Positions 663 through 61,741 of a stretch of 64,000 bases of DNA are shown here, piece by piece. The stretch comes from Paragordius varius (Eukaryota; Animalia; Nematomorpha), in assembly GCA_964247055.1 (NCBI GenBank), contig OZ176051.1, forward strand, positions 5,022,001 to 5,086,000, read 5' to 3'. Both the position numbers and the translations under genes were made by a program. Numbering within the stretch: position 1 is the first letter of the stretch; every line of letters begins with the position of its first letter. Below the pieces are notes generated by a model. It searched no databases, was not told the DNA's origin, and was given only the letters and a program-made list of their open reading frames with translations.

Positions 663-2904
663 GCGCAGTCAAATTATATAGATATGTTTTAATAGTAATT
701 AAGCGTTTTTATACCGTATCATCATGCCTCCAAATAGTATGAAGTATGCAACAAAATTTTTCTAAAAATTTATTTTTTGAAAAAGTCTCGATTTATCCCA
801 TATTTAAAATTTTTATCGTACAAGCTCGGCATTTTTGCGTCTAAGTGATCTAGCCCATTTTAGAAAAGCAAAACATTCAAGTTTCATCTGGGAATCGGTA
901 ATGGGGACGTGAATGAACGTGCAATTGGGAAAAGCTTGCTGATCCTGAGGTTAGATTTAGGTCGATGGTCACAGGCTATCTCATACCTTGACCGCTATCG
1001 TAACACACTACTGGTTGAGAAGATTGGCTTAAATAACTCTTTCGATTTTTGTTTGATGGGCAAGCTCAAACTTGGGAGATTGATTGTGGATTAACACTTA
1101 TTGGGGTGTTTTTCCTACAATTTGGTAACTCGTGGGAGAACAAGCTTGATTATGCGTTTCACTTTCATTATCTTTGTGATGACTTTTTTGTGTAATTGAC
1201 TGTTGTTTGTGAATAAGAAAACATTTTCTCTAAAAATCAACTTTGTTATTTAAAGACTTGTTTTTTCAATTATGTGTTAGCGGGTTGTTCTCAACTCTCT
1301 GATGAGCGGACAGTTCCTCTTTTGGGAAAAGATAGTATATATTCAAATGTGTAAAGGAGGTTTGTATTAAAAATAACGTTATATATATTCTGATAGCAAA
1401 ATACATCAGGATAATCATGGTGCTTTTGGTTTTGTCCCTACGAGTGATATAAGAAGGTTATTTAAACTTTTGTGGTAAAAATCCTATCAGAAAATGGTAA
1501 AATTTGGGCACATTTTTTAAAATAATTTTTTTTGGTGAAAGCTAATAGGGGCTTCAATTTGAAAAATATTACTAAAAAATATTATAACCACATATAAAAA
1601 GCAAAACAATATTTTGAAATAATTTTAATTCTTAGATGTGGGCTCCGAAGTCCCAAAGTTTTTGCTCTTTTAAATGAACTAGATTTCCAAAATAAACGCA
1701 AAAATGCCGGGATCGCGCGAATAAAATTTTATTTTATAAAAAGTTGAAAAAAATATTTTTTAAAGTTTATAAGGTTAAAACCTGCAAATTTTCATTCTGA
1801 TTCCATAAATTTAATAAAATGTAATTTAAATCTGTATAACCGGCCTTTTTACCAAAATTTCATGGTTGATAAAGACCTATTTAAGCTCTAAACTATATTT
1901 CAAATTTGAAATGAAGGATCTGAGGTTGTGATTGAATGGGCAAGGAATCAATCGCATAAGATTTAATTTTTATCTATTTATAAATAAATCAAGGTTAAAT
2001 TAAATTTCGGCAAAACTTTTAAGATGCGCGGTTTTTAGACAAGTCTCCTTCTGAATGAATATCTATCCCCAGCTCAAAAAGGCAAGTACTATTTGAATAT
2101 AAACAATCAATTAGAATATTTTGGAGGCGTCGATCACGGTTAGCCACTTTTTTAAATTTTAGCGAATTCAAGCTTATTTTGGTATATAACGCATATATTA
2201 AAATTTGACAAGCTTTTAAATCATATGGGCTACATTAGGCGCTTGACCCTTATTTCAGATTTTTATATTTATTTTATAAGTTTTTAACTTACCCTAAAAA
2301 TCTATACATAGAGACAAATAAAGACTAAAAAAATATATATAATAACAATATTTCCCCAGAATAACCTTGTTTAAGCCCATCAACCTAAATTTATCAGAAA
2401 ATAAAGATAATCAAACATGTAATTATTTATAAATTTGTCATTCAAAAATATTAATTTTATATAATTTGATAAACTTTTACAATGATTATGATCATATAAT
2501 TAGTAATTAAATCACATAATAAATTAAATATATGTTACACATAAACAATGTTAATGAAATCTAATGATCCCCCCTCAAATAAAAAGGGATGATAACATTT
2601 GATAAAACAGCGGAATGATTATATATAAAAAAGGAGAGAGAAAAATGGATTAAATCACAAAATCTATATATATATATATAATAATAAATATTACAATTTG
2701 CTATTAGTTCACAAAATGCTGTCTGTAATATATAGTATAGTCAAACACAAATAATAAAATTATTTTGATTAAGTTTTGATTCCATATCCTATTAAAGTGT
2801 TATAAACCACACACCCAAAAGACGAAACGAAATAAATAATTTTTTGAGATTTTAATTAAACACTTTGATTTTGCGCATAAAAGTTAATAATTTTTGTTGA
2901 TTGT

Positions 2905-5900
2905 TTAAGGCCCACGAGAGGTATGATCTTCAATCGAAGCCCCTGCATTGTTGTGTTGAGATATTGCACTAGCAGCTGATCCACCAAGCGGTACTAAAAC
3001 ACTAACATAAGTTTTTGGAAAATATCCAGTTTTACCACGTAACGTACCTTCATACCTAAAAATTAATATATGTATGGGTTAGCAATGATCGCACAAACCA
3101 TTTTGGGTGACTGGATCTAATTGAGATTATAATGCACGGATAATAAAGCTTTTGGTAAGCATTTTAACTTTTACTTGAGAACACTCCGATTACATATTAG
3201 AAATCGTTGTTTAATTTTAATTACAAAATAAAAAAAAATTGAAAACAAATACCAATTTTCATCAATGTCTTTGGTCAAATTTATGATATCATTTTCCTTG
3301 AATTCCAATTCGCCTGGGTTCAGAGCTTCAAAATCGTAAAGAGCCTTACATTGAGGAATCATTTTAGAGTTGGGATACATTCCGGCACCCCCGTGCTGCG
3401 CTATTACAGGCGGTCCTCCAATATGATGTCCACCTGCACCATTTGCTTTACATAAAAAAACATTAGGTTTTAAAAATTACTTTAGTCTTTAAAGGAACAG
3501 TAAACAATATTGACTAAAAATTAATGAAAATTGCTTAGGATGTAGGTTCAAAAAAATGATAATTAATATTGCAAATATAGAGTACAATAAAATAGTTGAA
3601 ATTAAAAAGTAAATTAGGGTATTATGAAAGAAAATAGTTTACGATAACATTTAAGCGAGTAAAATCTCTATCGTTGTACAACTGAATAATCAAGCAATAA
3701 ATATGGGATAAAGAACAAATAAACAATTCTAATATGAAAGTAAGTAAAAAGATGTGAAGACAAATATAATATTACTTGATAAACCTTCGACCAAAAAGTG
3801 GGGCTGAGCCATTCTCGGTTTCTCATTTGCTTCTTGTTTTCTATTTTAAAATAAATCAATAAAACATATTTTTTACTCAATTTCCAAAATTATTGAAAAA
3901 AATGGTTACGAATAAAAATAATATACTTTTTCTGCAACTTTTCAACCAAATCCTCATAACTAGCAAGGCATTTCTTGTGATAATCTTGCATGGCTTCGGC
4001 GAAGGCACATAATTCAGATATCAATTCAGCCTAATATAGCGGCATGATATATATTTAATTTTTTGAAAAATAATAATTACAAATATCATATAACGACGAC
4101 AAATGTAGAGTTTAAAGGAAAAAATTTCATTTTTTTCATTGAAAGAAAAAACAATTCCTTATTTTTATTGATGTCGTAGACTTATCATAAAAATGCCAAA
4201 AATTGTATGATATTTAAAAAACTTAAATAATATAAAAAAGTAATACATCATTCGATAATAGGTATTGCATGGCTTGCGTTGCTTGACTTTTTGATTCAAT
4301 AAACTTGGCTTCAGCTTCAGCCAATTCAGAATCTAAATGAAAATTATAAGCTAACAAGCTCATATAATTTATTTCAAGATTAATTATGTAGAAAGATATC
4401 TAGATATGTATATTATTTCAAATAGGTGCTTATTTAACATTTCCACAGATCAGGGTAGATATCCTTAAATTTTAATTAAATAGATAAATATTAGCGTCTG
4501 TGTAACCTATTGACAGATTAGTTAGACAAGTTTTTATTAAATAATTTAATGATGTTATAAAACCAAACCTGTTGTTTTCTTTCTTTTCTTGGCATCAAAA
4601 TCTAAACGTCTCCCATAAGTTTTCTTGCAAAGATGCTATAGCAAAATAAAAAATAACTCAATTTATGTAAATACAAACACATAATTTCGTAAAATAGTAA
4701 GATATACAAAACGTAAAGGACTATGATACGATATGATATTTGTATCTTTCATCTCATTTAATTAATTAATTTTTTTATACAGCATTTAAAATCAATCGAT
4801 TACACACAGCGTGATATTAGACCTTTCAAATAGGTAAAAAAATTTAACAAGTAAGCTCATATAGATATAAAATGAATTAATATTTTGATAAAGAAACCGA
4901 AAAATATATACCAGCACATCTTTAACATCCTTTTCTTGGAGATTTTTGAACGGTTCCAACACATTTTGCCTCACATTATCCTCCAAACCGTACTTTATGT
5001 CAGCCAAATGTTTCATCGTTTCACCCGATTGAACAAGGGCTTGTCCTGTATTTACAATAAAAATGTTTGATAAGAAAAGTGCTTGATAGTAAATTAGAGG
5101 CAAAAATAACGCGGATGAAAGAAATTTTGTTGGCTTAAACGCCTTTTCAATTGGTTAATAAAATTGTTGTCCAAATATAAAAATAGTTTTAGTTTATAGC
5201 TGGAATCGTACATAGATATGGATAAATTAAACGAAAAAAAAGCGAAAACACATCTTGCTTACAAGGGCTTTTAAACAGTTATATACTCAATTAATCTAAC
5301 AAATAAATTTAAGAAACAAAACAAAAAACTAAAGCTAAAAATTGGAAAAAAAATTACCAAAAATGGAATCATAGCCCAAGCTTTGGCCATACTTTATCAT
5401 GGAGTTGCCAAGCTCGCCTTCCGGTTGCGGATAAACTGAATTGTATTCTTGTCCCTTCATTTTTTGGTAAGCACTTAATGCACCCAGTTTAGCTCTAGTT
5501 GCTATATATATATATATATATATATATAAAGACATGTAAAATTTATTTTTGGTAATTTTTTGATAAAGCAGATATATTCTTTTTGCCGATTTTATTTAAT
5601 AAATTATGCGAAAAATATTATATTATAATTCAAACATGTGTTCGCCATTAGATTTAAATATGGAAATTTTTAAATAGCTGAATATCACAATAATATTAAT
5701 TTTGTGTAAAAAATGTATAAATTTACCAGGATTAGGTTGTAAAAATTCTTTGGTTTTAGTTGATACATCTTCCAAAAGTTCAGCTGTAGTATTACATTTC
5801 TAATATATTAAATAATTATTTATAAAAAATATTAGACATTAAAATAACGCTAATGTTGTTTTTTTATATGCTGCCGATAATTACACTATTTATTAAATGT

Positions 5901-8257
5901 TAAAACTATAGTTATAATTTACAAGATTAACACTTGAATACAACACATTCATTTCAGTCCTTCGATTCAAATTGGGGTAGTTGGATACCCCAGGCCTGTT
6001 TAAATTAATTACAATATGAAGGAATCAAAACCATGGCAAAATTTTGCACTTATATAACATTAATAAACCAATATATAAAAATTTTATTCAAACTTATTTT
6101 AATGTAAAACCCAAAGATAAAAATTTAGTCAACGTAACATGTGTGCATTGGCTAAATTGAAAAATAATACAAAATAAACCACTTTTTCTATTTCTATCAA
6201 TGTTAGATGTATTTTAAAAAAATTAGCTGTAATTTTACCTTTAAAATTAAATGAACACGATATGCAAAAATTTGGTAAAAAATAAAATGGCCTCGAAATA
6301 GTTAGACATGGACCTTTTTAAAACTGAATTTTAGATATTTTAGCTTATTTATATAATTTTTATTAGGGTAGAAGCATAAATTTAAATTTGGACCGTTTCC
6401 TTCAGTAGTGTTTTAAAATTATCAATTTAAATTCTGGGGTATTCACATTACCTTAACAGTGTTAATGATATCAAAGAGTTATAAAAATCCTAATCCTTAT
6501 GTGGCTAAGCGTTTTAGAAATACAGACTTTTTTTAGTTATACTATATATTTATTTTTACAATCGATATCGATTCAATTTATGTGAATTTATTGAAAAAGC
6601 ATATGATGAGTATACAATTTACTATTAAAACATTTCTGACGTATAGGAAATATTTTTTATAGCTGTGTAAGCATTTTATCTATCCTATACTAATTGCTTT
6701 GATCATTATAAATTGTCATTCACATATACATACATACATAATTACTTTAAAAAAACGTAAAATATTAAAAACGAGTAAACAATTAAGATATTTAAAAAAG
6801 TATAGATAGCTTTTGTATACGATATCGCGACATCAACTTTTAACAAAAAAGATAGTCATTATTTATTTGTATGTAATATATTTAAAATTTAAATAATTAT
6901 TCTTATTAGTAGTGTTAAAACATTGGAAACTACCTGTTGAGGCAAAAAAATTTAATTACTATATATGTATATAATATTTTTAATTAAGAAATGGATAAAA
7001 AATTTGGTTTGCAAAAACGATATAAAATATTATTTATAGGATCCTAGTATATATATATATATATATAAATGCAAATCATGTAAATATGAATATCTCGCTG
7101 CCAAAAAATAAATTTATTCTAAGTCTCTTATACAAGATAATACATATTGAATATAAAACTAACACGGTAACATTTCAAACAAAATGTTATATATAATAGT
7201 CAATCATTCAGAGTTATGGAAAAAAATGTTGGCATACATAACTTTAAAGGACACATGAAACAATGTTTAGACAATAAAAAATGTTTAAAAGTATTCAGCC
7301 GTTAAAAAAACTTAAATCTCTAAGGTAAAGCAGAAAAGAGTTTAGAAAATACATTAAATTTTTTGAAAATAGCAAATAGAGATATTATTTTAATGAATTA
7401 ATTAATGATATTTTGCATTTTTTAAAAAATTTAAATATAGAAATACAAAAAATAATAATAATAAGTAATTAAATATAAATTGATGAAAATGTAATTTTTG
7501 CGCTAAAATCAATAGAGTTGTGAATACATATTTAATGAGTTTTATATTGCACGGGCCCCAATAAAACTTATTGTAAAAAATGAAAAAACTTATAAAACCT
7601 AGAACTTTAATTATAATTATAAAAATACATATTTTATAAAATGTTTCGATAAAAAATTATTTATGTCCATATGGTTTTTAATTTAAATATTTTTATGTTG
7701 CAATTACACCGTTGATCAATGTAAAAAAATATAATAATGAAATTTAATTAATTAGCAAAAATACTAGTATGTATTCCAAAGTATGATTTTGAGCCAATAT
7801 TTTGAAAGATATTTTTCCGTGCAAAATATATATTGGAGAATATAAAATTGTATTAATAAAAGCTATGTCTTGTGCATAAAATATTGAATTTTTTGTCAAT
7901 CGATATAACATACAACTTATTCCAAATGTAAACGGTTGAAAAAAATTACGAAAAAATAAATGTCCAAACTTTACGAATTTTTGATGCATTAAAATAAAAA
8001 AATTCTTTATATAATTGATAGGAATAAAAATAATGTTCCATCCGTAAACAACTAAGTTAATAAGTAATATATGTTAAAATTTTACAAAAGAAAATTAGGA
8101 ACTTAATAAAATAGATTACCTTCTCCATTTCAACAAACTCGTCTTCCATTTTTGTGCTGTCGGCAGCTCCAAGCCTTTCTCGCAGATACTAATACTTTAA
8201 ATATAATAATACCTGATCTGCCTTATTCATTTGTTTTTTGAATCCAGTTAAAGACAT
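2905..8257 (-). CDS. SH3GL: Endophilin A (N-BAR + SH3), 11 exons, about 373 aa
   Basis: Exons 8213-8257, 8120-8188, 5727-5799, 5358-5501, 4912-5045, 4569-4635, 4247-4332, 3927-4030, 3785-3840, 3253-3445, 2905-3055. All GT-AG and phase-consistent (sum 1122 nt). Motifs: MSLTGFKKQMNKADQ, EFLQPNPATRAKL, YPQPEGELG, GRRLDFDAKK, and SH3 CKALYDFEALNPGELEFKENDII...ENWYEG...GYFPKTYV. Confidence 0.95.
5931..6461 (+). mobile_element. piggyBac-like non-autonomous element (family A), copy 1, in endophilin intron
   Basis: TTAA on both sides (5927-5930, 6462-6465). Ends CACTT.../...CAGTG. Subterminal CGATTCAAATTGGGGTA-N7-TACCCC motif at the left end, partly deleted at the right end. Confidence 0.75.
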
Positions 8258-13339: not shown

Positions 13340-26746
<13,407 letters not shown>

Positions 26747-58500: not shown

Positions 58501-58743
58501 AATACAATAAAATATTGTAAATTATTTAAAATAACCAATTTTTTTATTTATTTAACAAATTTTTTTAGCCAATCATAGATTACAGCTATGACAGTGATGA
58601 TGATTGGGAAGAATGCGACATGGGTGAAAGTTTGCATTCTAATGAAAAGGTATCTAAAATTTTCAGTTTAATTTCCATAAATGTCAATTAAATTTAATTT
58701 AAAATTCGTATAACCACTGCATTTATACCAAAATTGCAAAGTT

Positions 58744-58783
<40 letters not shown>

Positions 58784-59247
58784 GAAATCGATATGTGAAA
58801 ACCCCAAGTCAAATAGTTGTGTCGTACTGATGAGTGCTAACAAGCACGATAGTCTGCGATTACTATTGACGAAGGGTTTCACATATAATTTCTGTTAATA
58901 ATTATCTTTCTATTAATTTTTTATTTAATTTCCGATTATTATTATATAACGGATTTTACAACTGTTACAAAACATAATCAATCCTTCATTTACCATTACA
59001 AATCACATAAATATATCAATTTTTATATCACAGAAAAGTATACCCTTTTAAACTATGTTTTAAGTTTATAAGATTTTTTTTAATTATATCAACTATTCTA
59101 TTTTTCCTTGATAAATCTTATGTATACTATAGGAGGATGATGAAGAATTGGATGAAATACTTTATAGTTTGGAGGAAAATCCGGATGAAAAGTTAATTTT
59201 ATTATAAATTTATATGTTTAAAATAAACTGATCATAAAGGATTTAAA

Positions 59248-59311
<64 letters not shown>

Positions 59312-61741
59312 CCCCAAAGTTAAGAATGGTTAATTGATACAAGAATAGATTTTAGTGTAAATATCAACCTTTTTTAAATGATAATTTTGGATTAATTTGC
59401 TTTATTTTGGTGAAAAAAATGTTTAAAATATTTTGTCTTAAACGTAATTATATTTGGACTTTACTAAAAATAGTTTATTTATTTTAACATTTATTCCTCA
59501 ATTTATAATCAATGTTATCCAATAATTATCTTTTGCCACAGTGTACAATTGATTAAGAAAGTGAGACAACGTAAACTTCAACACAAACAACGCACAGCAG
59601 GGCTCGGGCGAAAAGACGCGTTCTTCAAAGTCCCCAAAAATATTAGTAATAATAATTCTGAGGCAGATGAAAATAGTAGCGAATCAGATTACGAGAGTGA
59701 TGATGGATTTATCGTTGAACATGGTTACCTTTCAGTCGATGAATTGAGTTGTCATTCAGATAATATGGCACCACAGCCAAATAATGGAATTAAGCCAAGC
59801 GACATGACTACAGCGATGACAAATACTGAAGAAATTTATGATGAAAACGGTCTAAAAAATTCTTTGGTATGTGTGGCATTAATTTTATTATTTAAGGAGA
59901 TATTTGTTTGCTCATTTTTATTTATTAAGTTACTAGCGTAAATCTCGTGCTTCTACGCAGCCCGAGGAAGTCCCTCGGACTTCTGGGGGGATTTGAATAA
60001 TGGGTTTACCGGTTTCCCGGAAACAGATCACAAAGCCAGCATTTTCCATTTTTAGAAATAGCTAGATTAGTAAAATCGTAATTATTGGGGGCGGGCGTGT
60101 ATTTATCATATTTTTTAGTTTTACTGAATTTTTGTAATATCAACTAATAAGACATAGAAAGAAGTTGGCACATACATTTTCCCTAATATATGTTTTTCAA
60201 AGATTAATTTATAAGTATATTTTTAGGTGAAAAGCAACAACACCCCGAATCACGATATGGATTTAATACGGGCCCAACAGAAGCTAAAGTTACAAGAATG
60301 GAAAGACGCCCTTAATAAAAAATATAATAATAATAATAATTTACTGGGTAAAGCAAATTCATCCGGCGATGCTAAAAATACTGGATACAATGCTAAATTG
60401 ATACCTAAGGTTATAGGACCAATACGTTGTGTTAATCCTTACCAAATCTCCAAGATTGATTGCGCTGCGCATTTTACCGACCATGAATTATGTTTTCAAG
60501 AAGTTAAAAACCTACAAGTATATCCAACATCTTTCATTTATTTTATATTTTTTATTTTTATTATTTTTTCTTGGGAAATAGAGTGCATTCCCATCTATAA
60601 TAATCCCGAATGTGGGAAAAAATACATGGGTCATTATAAACATCGTGACCCTTTATATAAATATATAAAAAAATATCCAAAATTTAGTTAATATATATAT
60701 ATATATGTATATAAATGATATTTTTCAGATCTTTAAAACTGGCCCACATGTCTTTTTAATATATAAGATTGAAATAGTTTAGTTATATTTTTGATTTTTA
60801 CTAGGCATGTCCATTATATGCCTTACCATTGGATTTATCAGCTCGTATTTCCAAAAAGACTTATCAAATCTTAACAACAAATGATAGTACACCAAACAAG
60901 ACATCTGCAAAACAAATTAATAAGCTTGAAACAAATACTAATTCACCTTCTTCTTGCATTAAACATTCCGCAAATAGTTTAACTAATGGATTTCATGATG
61001 AAAGCATCTCAAATGGCAATTTAAGTGTAGTGGGAAATGCGAAAAAACTTATTCCAGAATCGGGTAAATACAGTAAATTTGAAATTATAAAGACAAAACT
61101 TAAAATTCAAAGACTGACCATTTTTTTTATAAAGATGACCATATTTTTTAACGTTAATTTTCTTTATAACATTACTTTTGGTTGCAAAATAAGGCATAGA
61201 CATATTAATTGGTAACATATCACATTTTAAAAAATTTTAATTGTCTTTATCATTTTATTTTTTTGCTAAAATTGGGAATCCAATAAATATTTTTCCATAA
61301 ACTTTTCTATAAAATATATTTTAATCTTAGCTATTCCATATCTGGCTAAATTCGTGCATGGTAATAGTAAAAGCATTATTAAAATTGTGTCCGAATTTCA
61401 AGCTCTTTGGTGGAAAAGAGAAGCCAAATCCGATAGTTTGCTAAATGATAATGGTTCCGATTTTGCAGATATTCAAGTTACTTTTAAATAAATTTTAAAA
61501 TTTTCATTATTCAATGCACATTATTTTCTATATACATGTTCTTAATTTATAGCCAATTCCAAGTTTACCTAATCTCTTGTGCAAAAAACACATTGAAAAT
61601 ACTATAAAACACATTGCGACATATTTGAGTTCAGATAAAAATGCATTTAATCGAGCCTGTTGGATCCTGAAGGATGAATTTTATCAACAATACCATGATG
61701 TTTTTGAATCAATTGACATACATTCACAAATTATTAATTGA
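55518..61741 (+). CDS. CHAF1A: Chromatin assembly factor 1 subunit A (p150)
   Basis: Exons 55518-55684, 55713-55745, 55771-55990, 56189-56419, 56772-57050, 57602-57947, 58207-58319, 58569-58649, 59133-59191, 59542-59866, 60227-60517, 60805-61063, 61331-61476, 61553-61741. KER coiled coil, QVFEKFFMK, FFKPFVVK, KLLQFHENHRPAYYGT, IDYSYDSDDDWEE, DDGFIVEHGYLSVDE, FVHGNSK, RACWIL. Confidence 0.88.
58791..58886 (+). ncRNA. Type I hammerhead-ribozyme-like RNA with minimal helix III and GAUA core variant, in CHAF1A intron
   Basis: Helix I tcgta/tgcga, extended by aatag/ctatt, gtc/gac, ccc/ggg and atatgtgaaa/tttcacatat. Core CTGATGA (58827-58833). Helix II gtgct-aaca-agcac. Then GATA, then GTC (58852-58854). 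Confidence 0.6.
59252..59309. repeat. (TA)n microsatellite, the longest of many in the window
   Basis: About 29 uninterrupted TA units. Others at about 5503, 7027, 14803, 22166, 37944, 42327, 47495, 56733 and 58747. Confidence 0.95.
59932..60110. mobile_element. Dispersed repeat related to the 9.3-10.4 kb array, with an ACTAG-type start
   Basis: 59990-60070 is the reverse complement of about 9815-9895 (ccggaaacagatcacaaagcca...cattttccattttta). Begins ttactagcgtaaatctcgtgcttc. Confidence 0.5.

Follow-up and report, generated by a model that had tools for sequence, protein, structure and literature searches.

A hammerhead-like hairpin with a GAUA core in a CHAF1A-like intron of Paragordius varius is most likely a dead relic within a truncated copy of a 445-nt hammerhead retroelement

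Introduction

The HH9 and HH10 hammerheads of amniote introns are single-copy, deeply conserved and equipped with a stable helix III. In metazoans, canonical type I hammerheads carry a helix III of 1-2 bp with a palindromic loop of 2-4 nt; their monomers are unstable, while dimers are active (Cervera and de la Pena 2014, PMC4209133). For Newt satellite 2, Sm-alpha of Schistosoma and HHR_Amex1 of the axolotl, the monomers are poorly active and the dimers active (PMC7229834, PMC4209133). The non-LTR retrozymes of metazoans are low-GC tandem repeats of 150-450 bp with one type I hammerhead each, and are accompanied by target-site duplications of more than 4 bp (Cervera and de la Pena 2020, PMC7229834).

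A preliminary description of a 64-kb stretch of P. varius DNA (called the window throughout the paper; unless a locus is named, all positions refer to it) had pointed out an intronic hammerhead-like hairpin with a GAUA core and without a real helix III. Two readings had been offered, a new natural variant of the core and a dead relic. Here, the hairpin was compared with its relatives in the same genome and with the systems named above. We assign a probability of about 0.92 to the reading that positions 58657-59005 represent a single 5'-truncated, non-coding copy of a hammerhead retroelement of approximately 445 nt, with the GAUA core being a dead relic. The window has a GC content of 27% and belongs to an AT-rich assembly of 110.6 Mb in 44 contigs.

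Results

The GAUA hairpin and its core

Direct reading of positions 58791-58886 gave the letters as first described, and the corresponding RNA folded into one nested hairpin with a minimum free energy (MFE) of -37.4 kcal/mol (z -6.8), a stability reached by 0 of 200 shuffled sequences. The opposite strand was less stable when folded (-31.5 kcal/mol). The claimed order of helix I, CUGAUGA, helix II, GAUAGUC and helix I was found as well (positions 58827-58854). All features are summarized in Table 1. The helix II 14-mer occurred 189 times in the genome in exactly this form. A cleavage triplet of the NUH type was present (GTC, 58852-58854), followed by TGCGA paired to TCGTA, and both ends of the motif exit through the long helix I, which is the type I topology. 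The GAAA box (G12 A13 A14, then A15.1) was broken, with GATA at positions 58848-58851. Likewise, a helix III closed by A15.1-U16.1, be it in cis or by a dimer palindrome, was absent, and a single nucleotide only was left between the candidate A and U of this helix. A residual self-pairing of GAU with GUC was calculated for the variant (-4.4 kcal/mol), which would bury G12, A13 and the cleavage-site C17. The complementarity of the UUGUG internal loop to the AACA loop of helix II, proposed earlier as a tertiary contact, amounts to 3 bp (UGU:ACA) by sequence reading and received no covariation support from the family.

Table 1. Positions of the hammerhead-derived motifs, copies of the 445-nt unit and host-gene exons in the 64-kb window
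Feature	Position	Strand	Basis or remark
CHAF1A-like exon end (...DYSYDSDDDWEE...; ...DYSYDSDDDWEECDMGESLHSNEK)	58596..58649	+	translation
Single 5'-truncated copy of the 445-nt unit (unit 277-445, then 1-150), full 3' tail, 'older subfamily' tail type	58657..59005	+	blastn vs unit trimer + pairwise alignment
(AT)18 microsatellite shortly 5' of the hairpin, grown from (AT)4 in the family unit	58746..58781	+	
Degenerate hammerhead in long helix-I hairpin	58791..58886	+	96 nt vs 99 nt in the family
CUGAUGA box (C3-A9; C3 U4 G5 A6 N7 G8 A9), intact	58827..58833	+	direct sequence reading
Helix II GUGCU/AGCAC with G10.1-C11.1 pair and AACA loop, intact	58834..58847	+	direct sequence reading
GAUAGUC, remnant of GAAACUAGUC	58848..58854	+	alignments + pattern counts
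Second, more decayed copy of the 445-nt unit (unit 394-445, then 1-88; 73% identity)	25056..25186	+	blastn
Peptidase_S9 exons around the second copy	25329-25490, 25929-26228, 26330-26530	+	Pfam
Third fragment of the 445-nt unit (unit 276-360; 78% identity), hammerhead part absent	1785..1868	+	blastn

A repeat family with a canonical core

Using the hairpin as BLAST query against its own genome, 342-435 first-look candidates were obtained (44 scored matches from 342), and the hairpin is present in several hundred copies. Thirty copies were fetched. A length of 99 nt was observed for 28 of the 29 copies other than that of the window, the exceptions among the 30 being the window copy with its 96 nt and L015. 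The aligned copies read CUGAUGA, GUGCU-AACA-AGCAC, GAAA, C-UA-G and UC, followed by UGCGA. Helix III of the family consists of A15.1-U16.1 and C15.2-G16.2 only and lies within the palindrome ACUAGU, for which a self-duplex of 6 bp with -6.2 kcal/mol was calculated. All core boxes, the G10.1-C11.1 pair, the three helices and the type I order were found in the consensus copies (124 exact). Judged by its letters, the family motif is a canonical metazoan type I hammerhead with a palindromic helix III of 1-2 bp (ACUAGU). It shares the type I order, the single base-paired helix III stem and the palindromic loop with Newt satellite 2, Schistosoma Sm-alpha and axolotl HHR_Amex1, but it is unrelated to them in sequence and has a loop of 2 nt (UA within ACUAGU) in place of their tetraloop. 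The very short palindromic helix III, implying action as a dimer, is likewise seen in the hammerheads that Penelope-like elements and their pLTRs carry (Cervera and de la Pena 2014, PMC4209133; Craig et al. 2021, PMC8557442). Different from the min-HHR of these elements, which lacks helix III or loop 3, the family combines a helix I of 5 bp plus internal loop with a helix II of 5 bp plus a 4-nt loop.

In a pairwise alignment with young canonical copies, the hairpin of the window copy showed zero substitutions. The sole difference was a deletion of 3 nt, namely of AAC between positions 58849 and 58850 (GA[AAC]UAGUC versus GAAACUAGUC of the family), by which A14, A15.1, C15.2 and the ACUAGU palindrome were taken out. 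What had been described as a motif with GAUA core and without helix III is thus this deletion relative to the family sequence. The exact pattern of the canonical core, CUGAUGAG-N12-CGAAACUAGUC, occurred 124 times in the genome, while its GAUAGUC version occurred twice, in the window copy and at G000:C1:13497083; reversed-pattern controls for these counts gave 0. For the stretch bounded by helix II and the 3' strand of helix I, 74 of the first 100 of 155 copies listed were canonical. The remaining 26 of these 100 carried approximately 18 different defects, including G-to-A changes at a CpG, single substitutions and deletions of 1, 3 and 5 nt. Because of this variety, GAUA is regarded as one item of a sporadic damage spectrum.

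A tree of the copies was built without the deletion columns. The window copy grouped with L048 and L049 (support 89/86), and the cores of both are intact. The other GAUAGUC copy (G000:C1:13497082-13497257; L055 / L032) fell into a different group. Joining both GAUAGUC copies cost 14.3 log-likelihood units, with a marginal p-value of 0.038 in the AU test. This other copy is truncated exactly at CUGAUGA, its flanks are unrelated, and it cannot fold, as the 5' strand of helix I is missing. The tree and the alignments suggest for the GAUAGUC deletion either two independent origins or a very minor source lineage; either way it would not define a subfamily. In view of the second locus, GAUAGUC could stem from a minor source copy instead of an accident after insertion.

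These data bear directly on the view that the GAUA motif without helix III is a genuine natural core variant which is active by monomer or dimer cleavage. The motif retains an intact CUGAUGA box, helix II, GUC triplet and helix I in a very stable fold, GAUAGUC is found at a second locus, and hammerheads with a minimal helix III do exist (PMC4209133). Opposed to this are the 2 copies versus 124 canonical ones, the canonical cores of the nearest relatives and the inability of the other GAUAGUC copy to fold. Moreover, the established requirement for A14 and the A15.1-U16.1 pair in all studied hammerheads argues against activity. A single nucleotide cannot close a hairpin, the dimer palindrome ACUAGU is destroyed and no second motif is found nearby. 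We consider an active variant very improbable; the numerous other sporadic defects equally speak against the idea of a new natural core. The alternative of a dead relic, already contained in the preliminary description, gained support from the private nature of the deletion and from the canonical relatives.

Independent of the window copy, some core variants were seen to recur in 2-4 of the listed copies, e.g., a G12-to-A change at the CpG of CACGAAAC. Loci with recurrent variants are for instance G000:C1:2311761, C2:1598007, C2:4802886 and C5:6338154. They may reflect repeated CpG decay or small sublineages that went on transposing with a damaged hammerhead.

Rfam scores of window and family copies

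No Rfam family reached its gathering score anywhere in the 64-kb window. In E-value mode, the best match on the motif at 58791-58886 was Hammerhead_HH9 with 20.5 bits at a gathering score of 52. Canonical family copies scored higher against HH9 (26.7-27 bits) than the window copy and were likewise found below the gathering score of every Rfam hammerhead. As canonical copies miss it too, the gathering score is a weak criterion for motifs with a short helix III. With the amniote intronic hammerheads HH9 and HH10 (Rfam RF02275) the window copy has the sense-strand intronic position and type I in common, besides HH9 being the best-scoring model; unlike them it is a member of a repeat family with a broken core.

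The 445-nt unit and its mode of insertion

Tandem Repeats Finder (TRF) detected an array with a period of 444, comprising 2.4 copies with 97% matches, at G000:C4:11694500-11698500. Successive GUC cleavage sites were 444-445 nt apart, and further direct pairs of hammerheads were spaced by 443-455 nt. The unit has a GC content of 26.5% and lacks an open reading frame, with the longest stop-free stretch being 61 amino acids even across a trimer. Its RNA folded with -92.2 kcal/mol (z -5.8), both ends being paired via the long helix I. In order to define the ends of the insertions, 30 loci were mapped on a trimer of the unit. The 3' ends fell into two clusters, at ~142-154 and, secondarily, at ~112-118 of the unit, while 5' ends were found anywhere from unit position 26 to 373. 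Some inserts exceeded one unit, with lengths of up to 727 nt, and approximately half of the mapped loci contained an inverted arm in head-to-head arrangement with a different truncation point. At 8 of 21 loci checked (L003, L006, L007, L011, L013, L017, L018, L025), target-site duplications of 13-16 bp were found, which enclose the whole insertion including the inverted arm.

By analogy, this anatomy is that of target-primed reverse transcription as known for Penelope-like elements, with which the family shares variable 5' truncation, inverted 5' arms, partial tandems and target-site duplications, next to the occurrence of a reverse transcriptase plus GIY-YIG in the same genome. Different from Penelope-like elements, no reverse transcriptase reading frame was found between family hammerheads among the 100 listed positions, where direct pairs at kilobase spacing were missing. 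The 445-nt unit fits a non-LTR retrozyme with a Penelope-style mode of insertion. In common with the metazoan non-LTR retrozymes (PMC7229834) are the short low-GC tandem unit without reading frame, one type I hammerhead per unit, target-site duplications of more than 4 bp, a species-specific family sequence and a highly self-paired unit RNA. Differences were observed in the arrangement, the insertions here being mostly dispersed, single or head-to-head and 5'-truncated rather than organized in long arrays; furthermore, the window copy comprises a single fragment of the unit, and its core is broken. Overall, the hammerhead derivation of the hairpin and its link to the reduced-helix-III hammerheads of Penelope-like elements and retrozymes, both put forward beforehand, agree with the 445-nt tandem unit and the Penelope-style insertions.

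Subfamilies and conservation of the hammerhead

The repeat family comprises at least 2-3 subfamilies. Between them, the 99-nt hairpin differed by 1-4 substitutions, while the adjacent 120-nt tail showed 13-17 substitutions and a further 8-10 gap columns. Between subfamilies, conservation of the complete hammerhead core was approximately 4-5 times better than that of the neighbouring sequence. This lower divergence of the hairpin compared to the tail argues, at the level of sequence comparison, for a need of the hammerhead in source copies and for selection on it. The covariation among genomic copies called for by the preliminary description was almost absent, owing to the youth and excessive uniformity of the family. 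The sole support came from one G/A difference opposite a U in helix I, by which the pairing is kept: the young subfamily has U.G at this place, the older subfamilies have U-A.

With several hundred copies of a near-perfect palindromic hairpin of 96-99 nt, a MITE-type DNA transposon with the terminal inverted repeats AUAUGUGAAA...UUUCACAUAU had to be considered as well, the likeness to a hammerhead then being due to chance. Such a transposon is at odds with the conservation, which extends beyond the hairpin by ~170 nt on the 5' side and ~150 nt on the 3' side. We rejected it on account of the fixed 3' end combined with variable 5' ends, the direct tandems of 445 nt, the target-site duplications that flank the long insertion rather than the hairpin, and the conserved core, and we see next to no chance for it.

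The window copy as an insertion

The locus of the window copy consists of one truncated unit only. Against a trimer of the tandem unit, the copy was 80% identical over 360 columns (blastn). Between approximately 58700 and 58886, identity to young canonical copies was interrupted at three places only, the AT expansion, the core deletion and a 7-nt deletion just 3' of the hairpin. The value of 80% is explained by subfamily differences in the tail, the expansion of (AT)n and the two small deletions. As the hairpin has no substitutions, the term 'old decayed copy' would overstate the age of the window copy. A target-site duplication was not recognisable around 58657-59005, where a 6-nt chance match was the only one observed. 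The sole other hammerhead-derived motif of the window (blastn) is located 33 kb away and is broken too.

This second copy had been placed at 25047-25130. A copy of the unit was indeed present, with its true extent given in Table 1; its hammerhead is strongly damaged. The CUGAUGA box reads CUGAUGU, GAUAUCAGCA replaces GAAACUAGUC at equal length by five substitutions with loss of the GUC triplet, and helix I carries further deletions. No Rfam hammerhead match was obtained for 25056-25186 even at E<=10. By comparison of the two sequences, the 'GAUA' of the second copy arose in a different way from that of the first.

Host genes and the intronic position

The exons of the host genes were searched singly. 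Pfam assigned CAF1A_dimeriz to the upstream exon from 57611 onward, and the GT at 58650 is taken as the 5' splice site behind the CHAF1A-like exon ending at 58649, with the element starting approximately 8 nt after it. The next downstream open reading frame on the + strand (59549-59941), containing ...DDGFIVEHGYLSVDE, gave no Pfam match. The second copy is flanked by Peptidase_S9 exons; its host gene, proposed earlier as DPP8/9, was assigned here at the level of an S9 peptidase. Both hammerhead copies were therefore found in introns of genes on the + strand and in the sense direction, as originally proposed.

This position raises the question of co-option by the host, either as a stable intronic hairpin that affects CHAF1A splicing or by selection of the core deletion, since a sense-strand ribozyme would be harmful. 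Proximity to the splice site, sense orientation and a substitution-free hairpin with a core-killing deletion as its only change would suit this idea. With ~10 private changes in 181 columns, a stretch of 96 nt free of substitutions is only slightly out of the ordinary (rough p about 0.04), and similar small deletions occur in many other copies, counted regardless of their gene context. We see a slim chance for co-option.

A candidate mobilising enzyme

Matches to GIY-YIG were obtained at seven places in the genome. One of them is a candidate Penelope-like element, L043 (G000:C1:4911000-4920500), with an intact open reading frame of 787 amino acids (3346-5709, minus strand), for which the genome search returned a GIY-YIG match of 27.4 bits. 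At E<=0.01 no Pfam family was found on this reading frame; in this element, GIY-YIG was assigned by Pfam solely to the inverted partner, a head-to-head, 5'-truncated copy with a 185-aa GIY-YIG reading frame at 5841-6398. The features of the 787-aa protein resemble clusters of reverse transcriptase plus GIY-YIG (HTH_animal, RVT_1) with a score of 0.98, on account of which Penelope-type machinery is taken to be present in the genome. L043 also contains 133-nt direct repeats 2485 nt apart, and its style of insertion is that of the hammerhead element. A hammerhead was not detected at E<=0.1 in L043, the single element of this kind that was inspected, and its similarity to the 445-nt unit was limited to AT-rich chance similarity.

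Discussion

A possible cycle for the family was drawn from published retrozymes. Tandem units would be transcribed, and two type I hammerheads would pair via the palindromic ACUAGU to form a dimeric helix III, after which each would cleave behind its GUC. An RNA of 445 nt would be set free with its ends clamped by the long helix I, and could then be circularised. The proposed unit-length RNAs (~445 nt), linear and circular, would carry the junction ...CUAGUC to UGCGAUUAC... Provided in trans, a Penelope-type reverse transcriptase may copy multimeric or unit-length RNA into the genome starting from the fixed 3' end, which would result in variable 5' truncation, inverted 5' arms and target-site duplications of 13-16 bp.

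For the window copy, with AAC gone from GAAACUAGUC, neither a cis nor a dimeric helix III would form, and a second hammerhead would not be available nearby. Even if the remaining A served as A15.1, a cis helix III would not be obtained, since a single G cannot close a hairpin. Established hammerhead biology holds A14 and the A15.1-U16.1 pair to be invariant and essential throughout the motifs studied. From the loss of A14, A15.1, C15.2 and the dimer palindrome, the window copy is predicted to be catalytically dead and functionless, a passenger in a CHAF1A-like intron. That a GAUAGUC core without helix III still cleaves site-specifically to some extent, for example by a non-canonical rearrangement of the core or together with a canonical copy in trans, is in our opinion very unlikely, including the milder form that the deletion was selected to silence a sense ribozyme in an essential gene next to its 5' splice site.

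With the window copy read as a relic of the retroelement, a false lead is removed: there is no new hammerhead core at 58791-58886, and the copy carries no new mechanism. What is added is one more species-specific retrozyme family of an already known kind, with clean Penelope-style insertion footprints. The family could serve as a natural series for the hammerhead defects that are tolerated in source copies and for a preferential inactivation of sense-strand ribozymes in introns.

Two minor observations were made on the sequences of other copies. The junctions of inverted arms (L007:1231-1357 and the head-to-head junctions of other loci) form long perfect hairpins with weak matches to plant miRNA families of Rfam, e.g., MIR781 with 37.5 bits at a gathering score of 88; these matches are artefacts of the inverted repeat. 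Finally, at the site of the (AT)18 microsatellite of the window copy, the length of (AT)n differs among other copies, too. The retroelement unit seeds a microsatellite at this spot.
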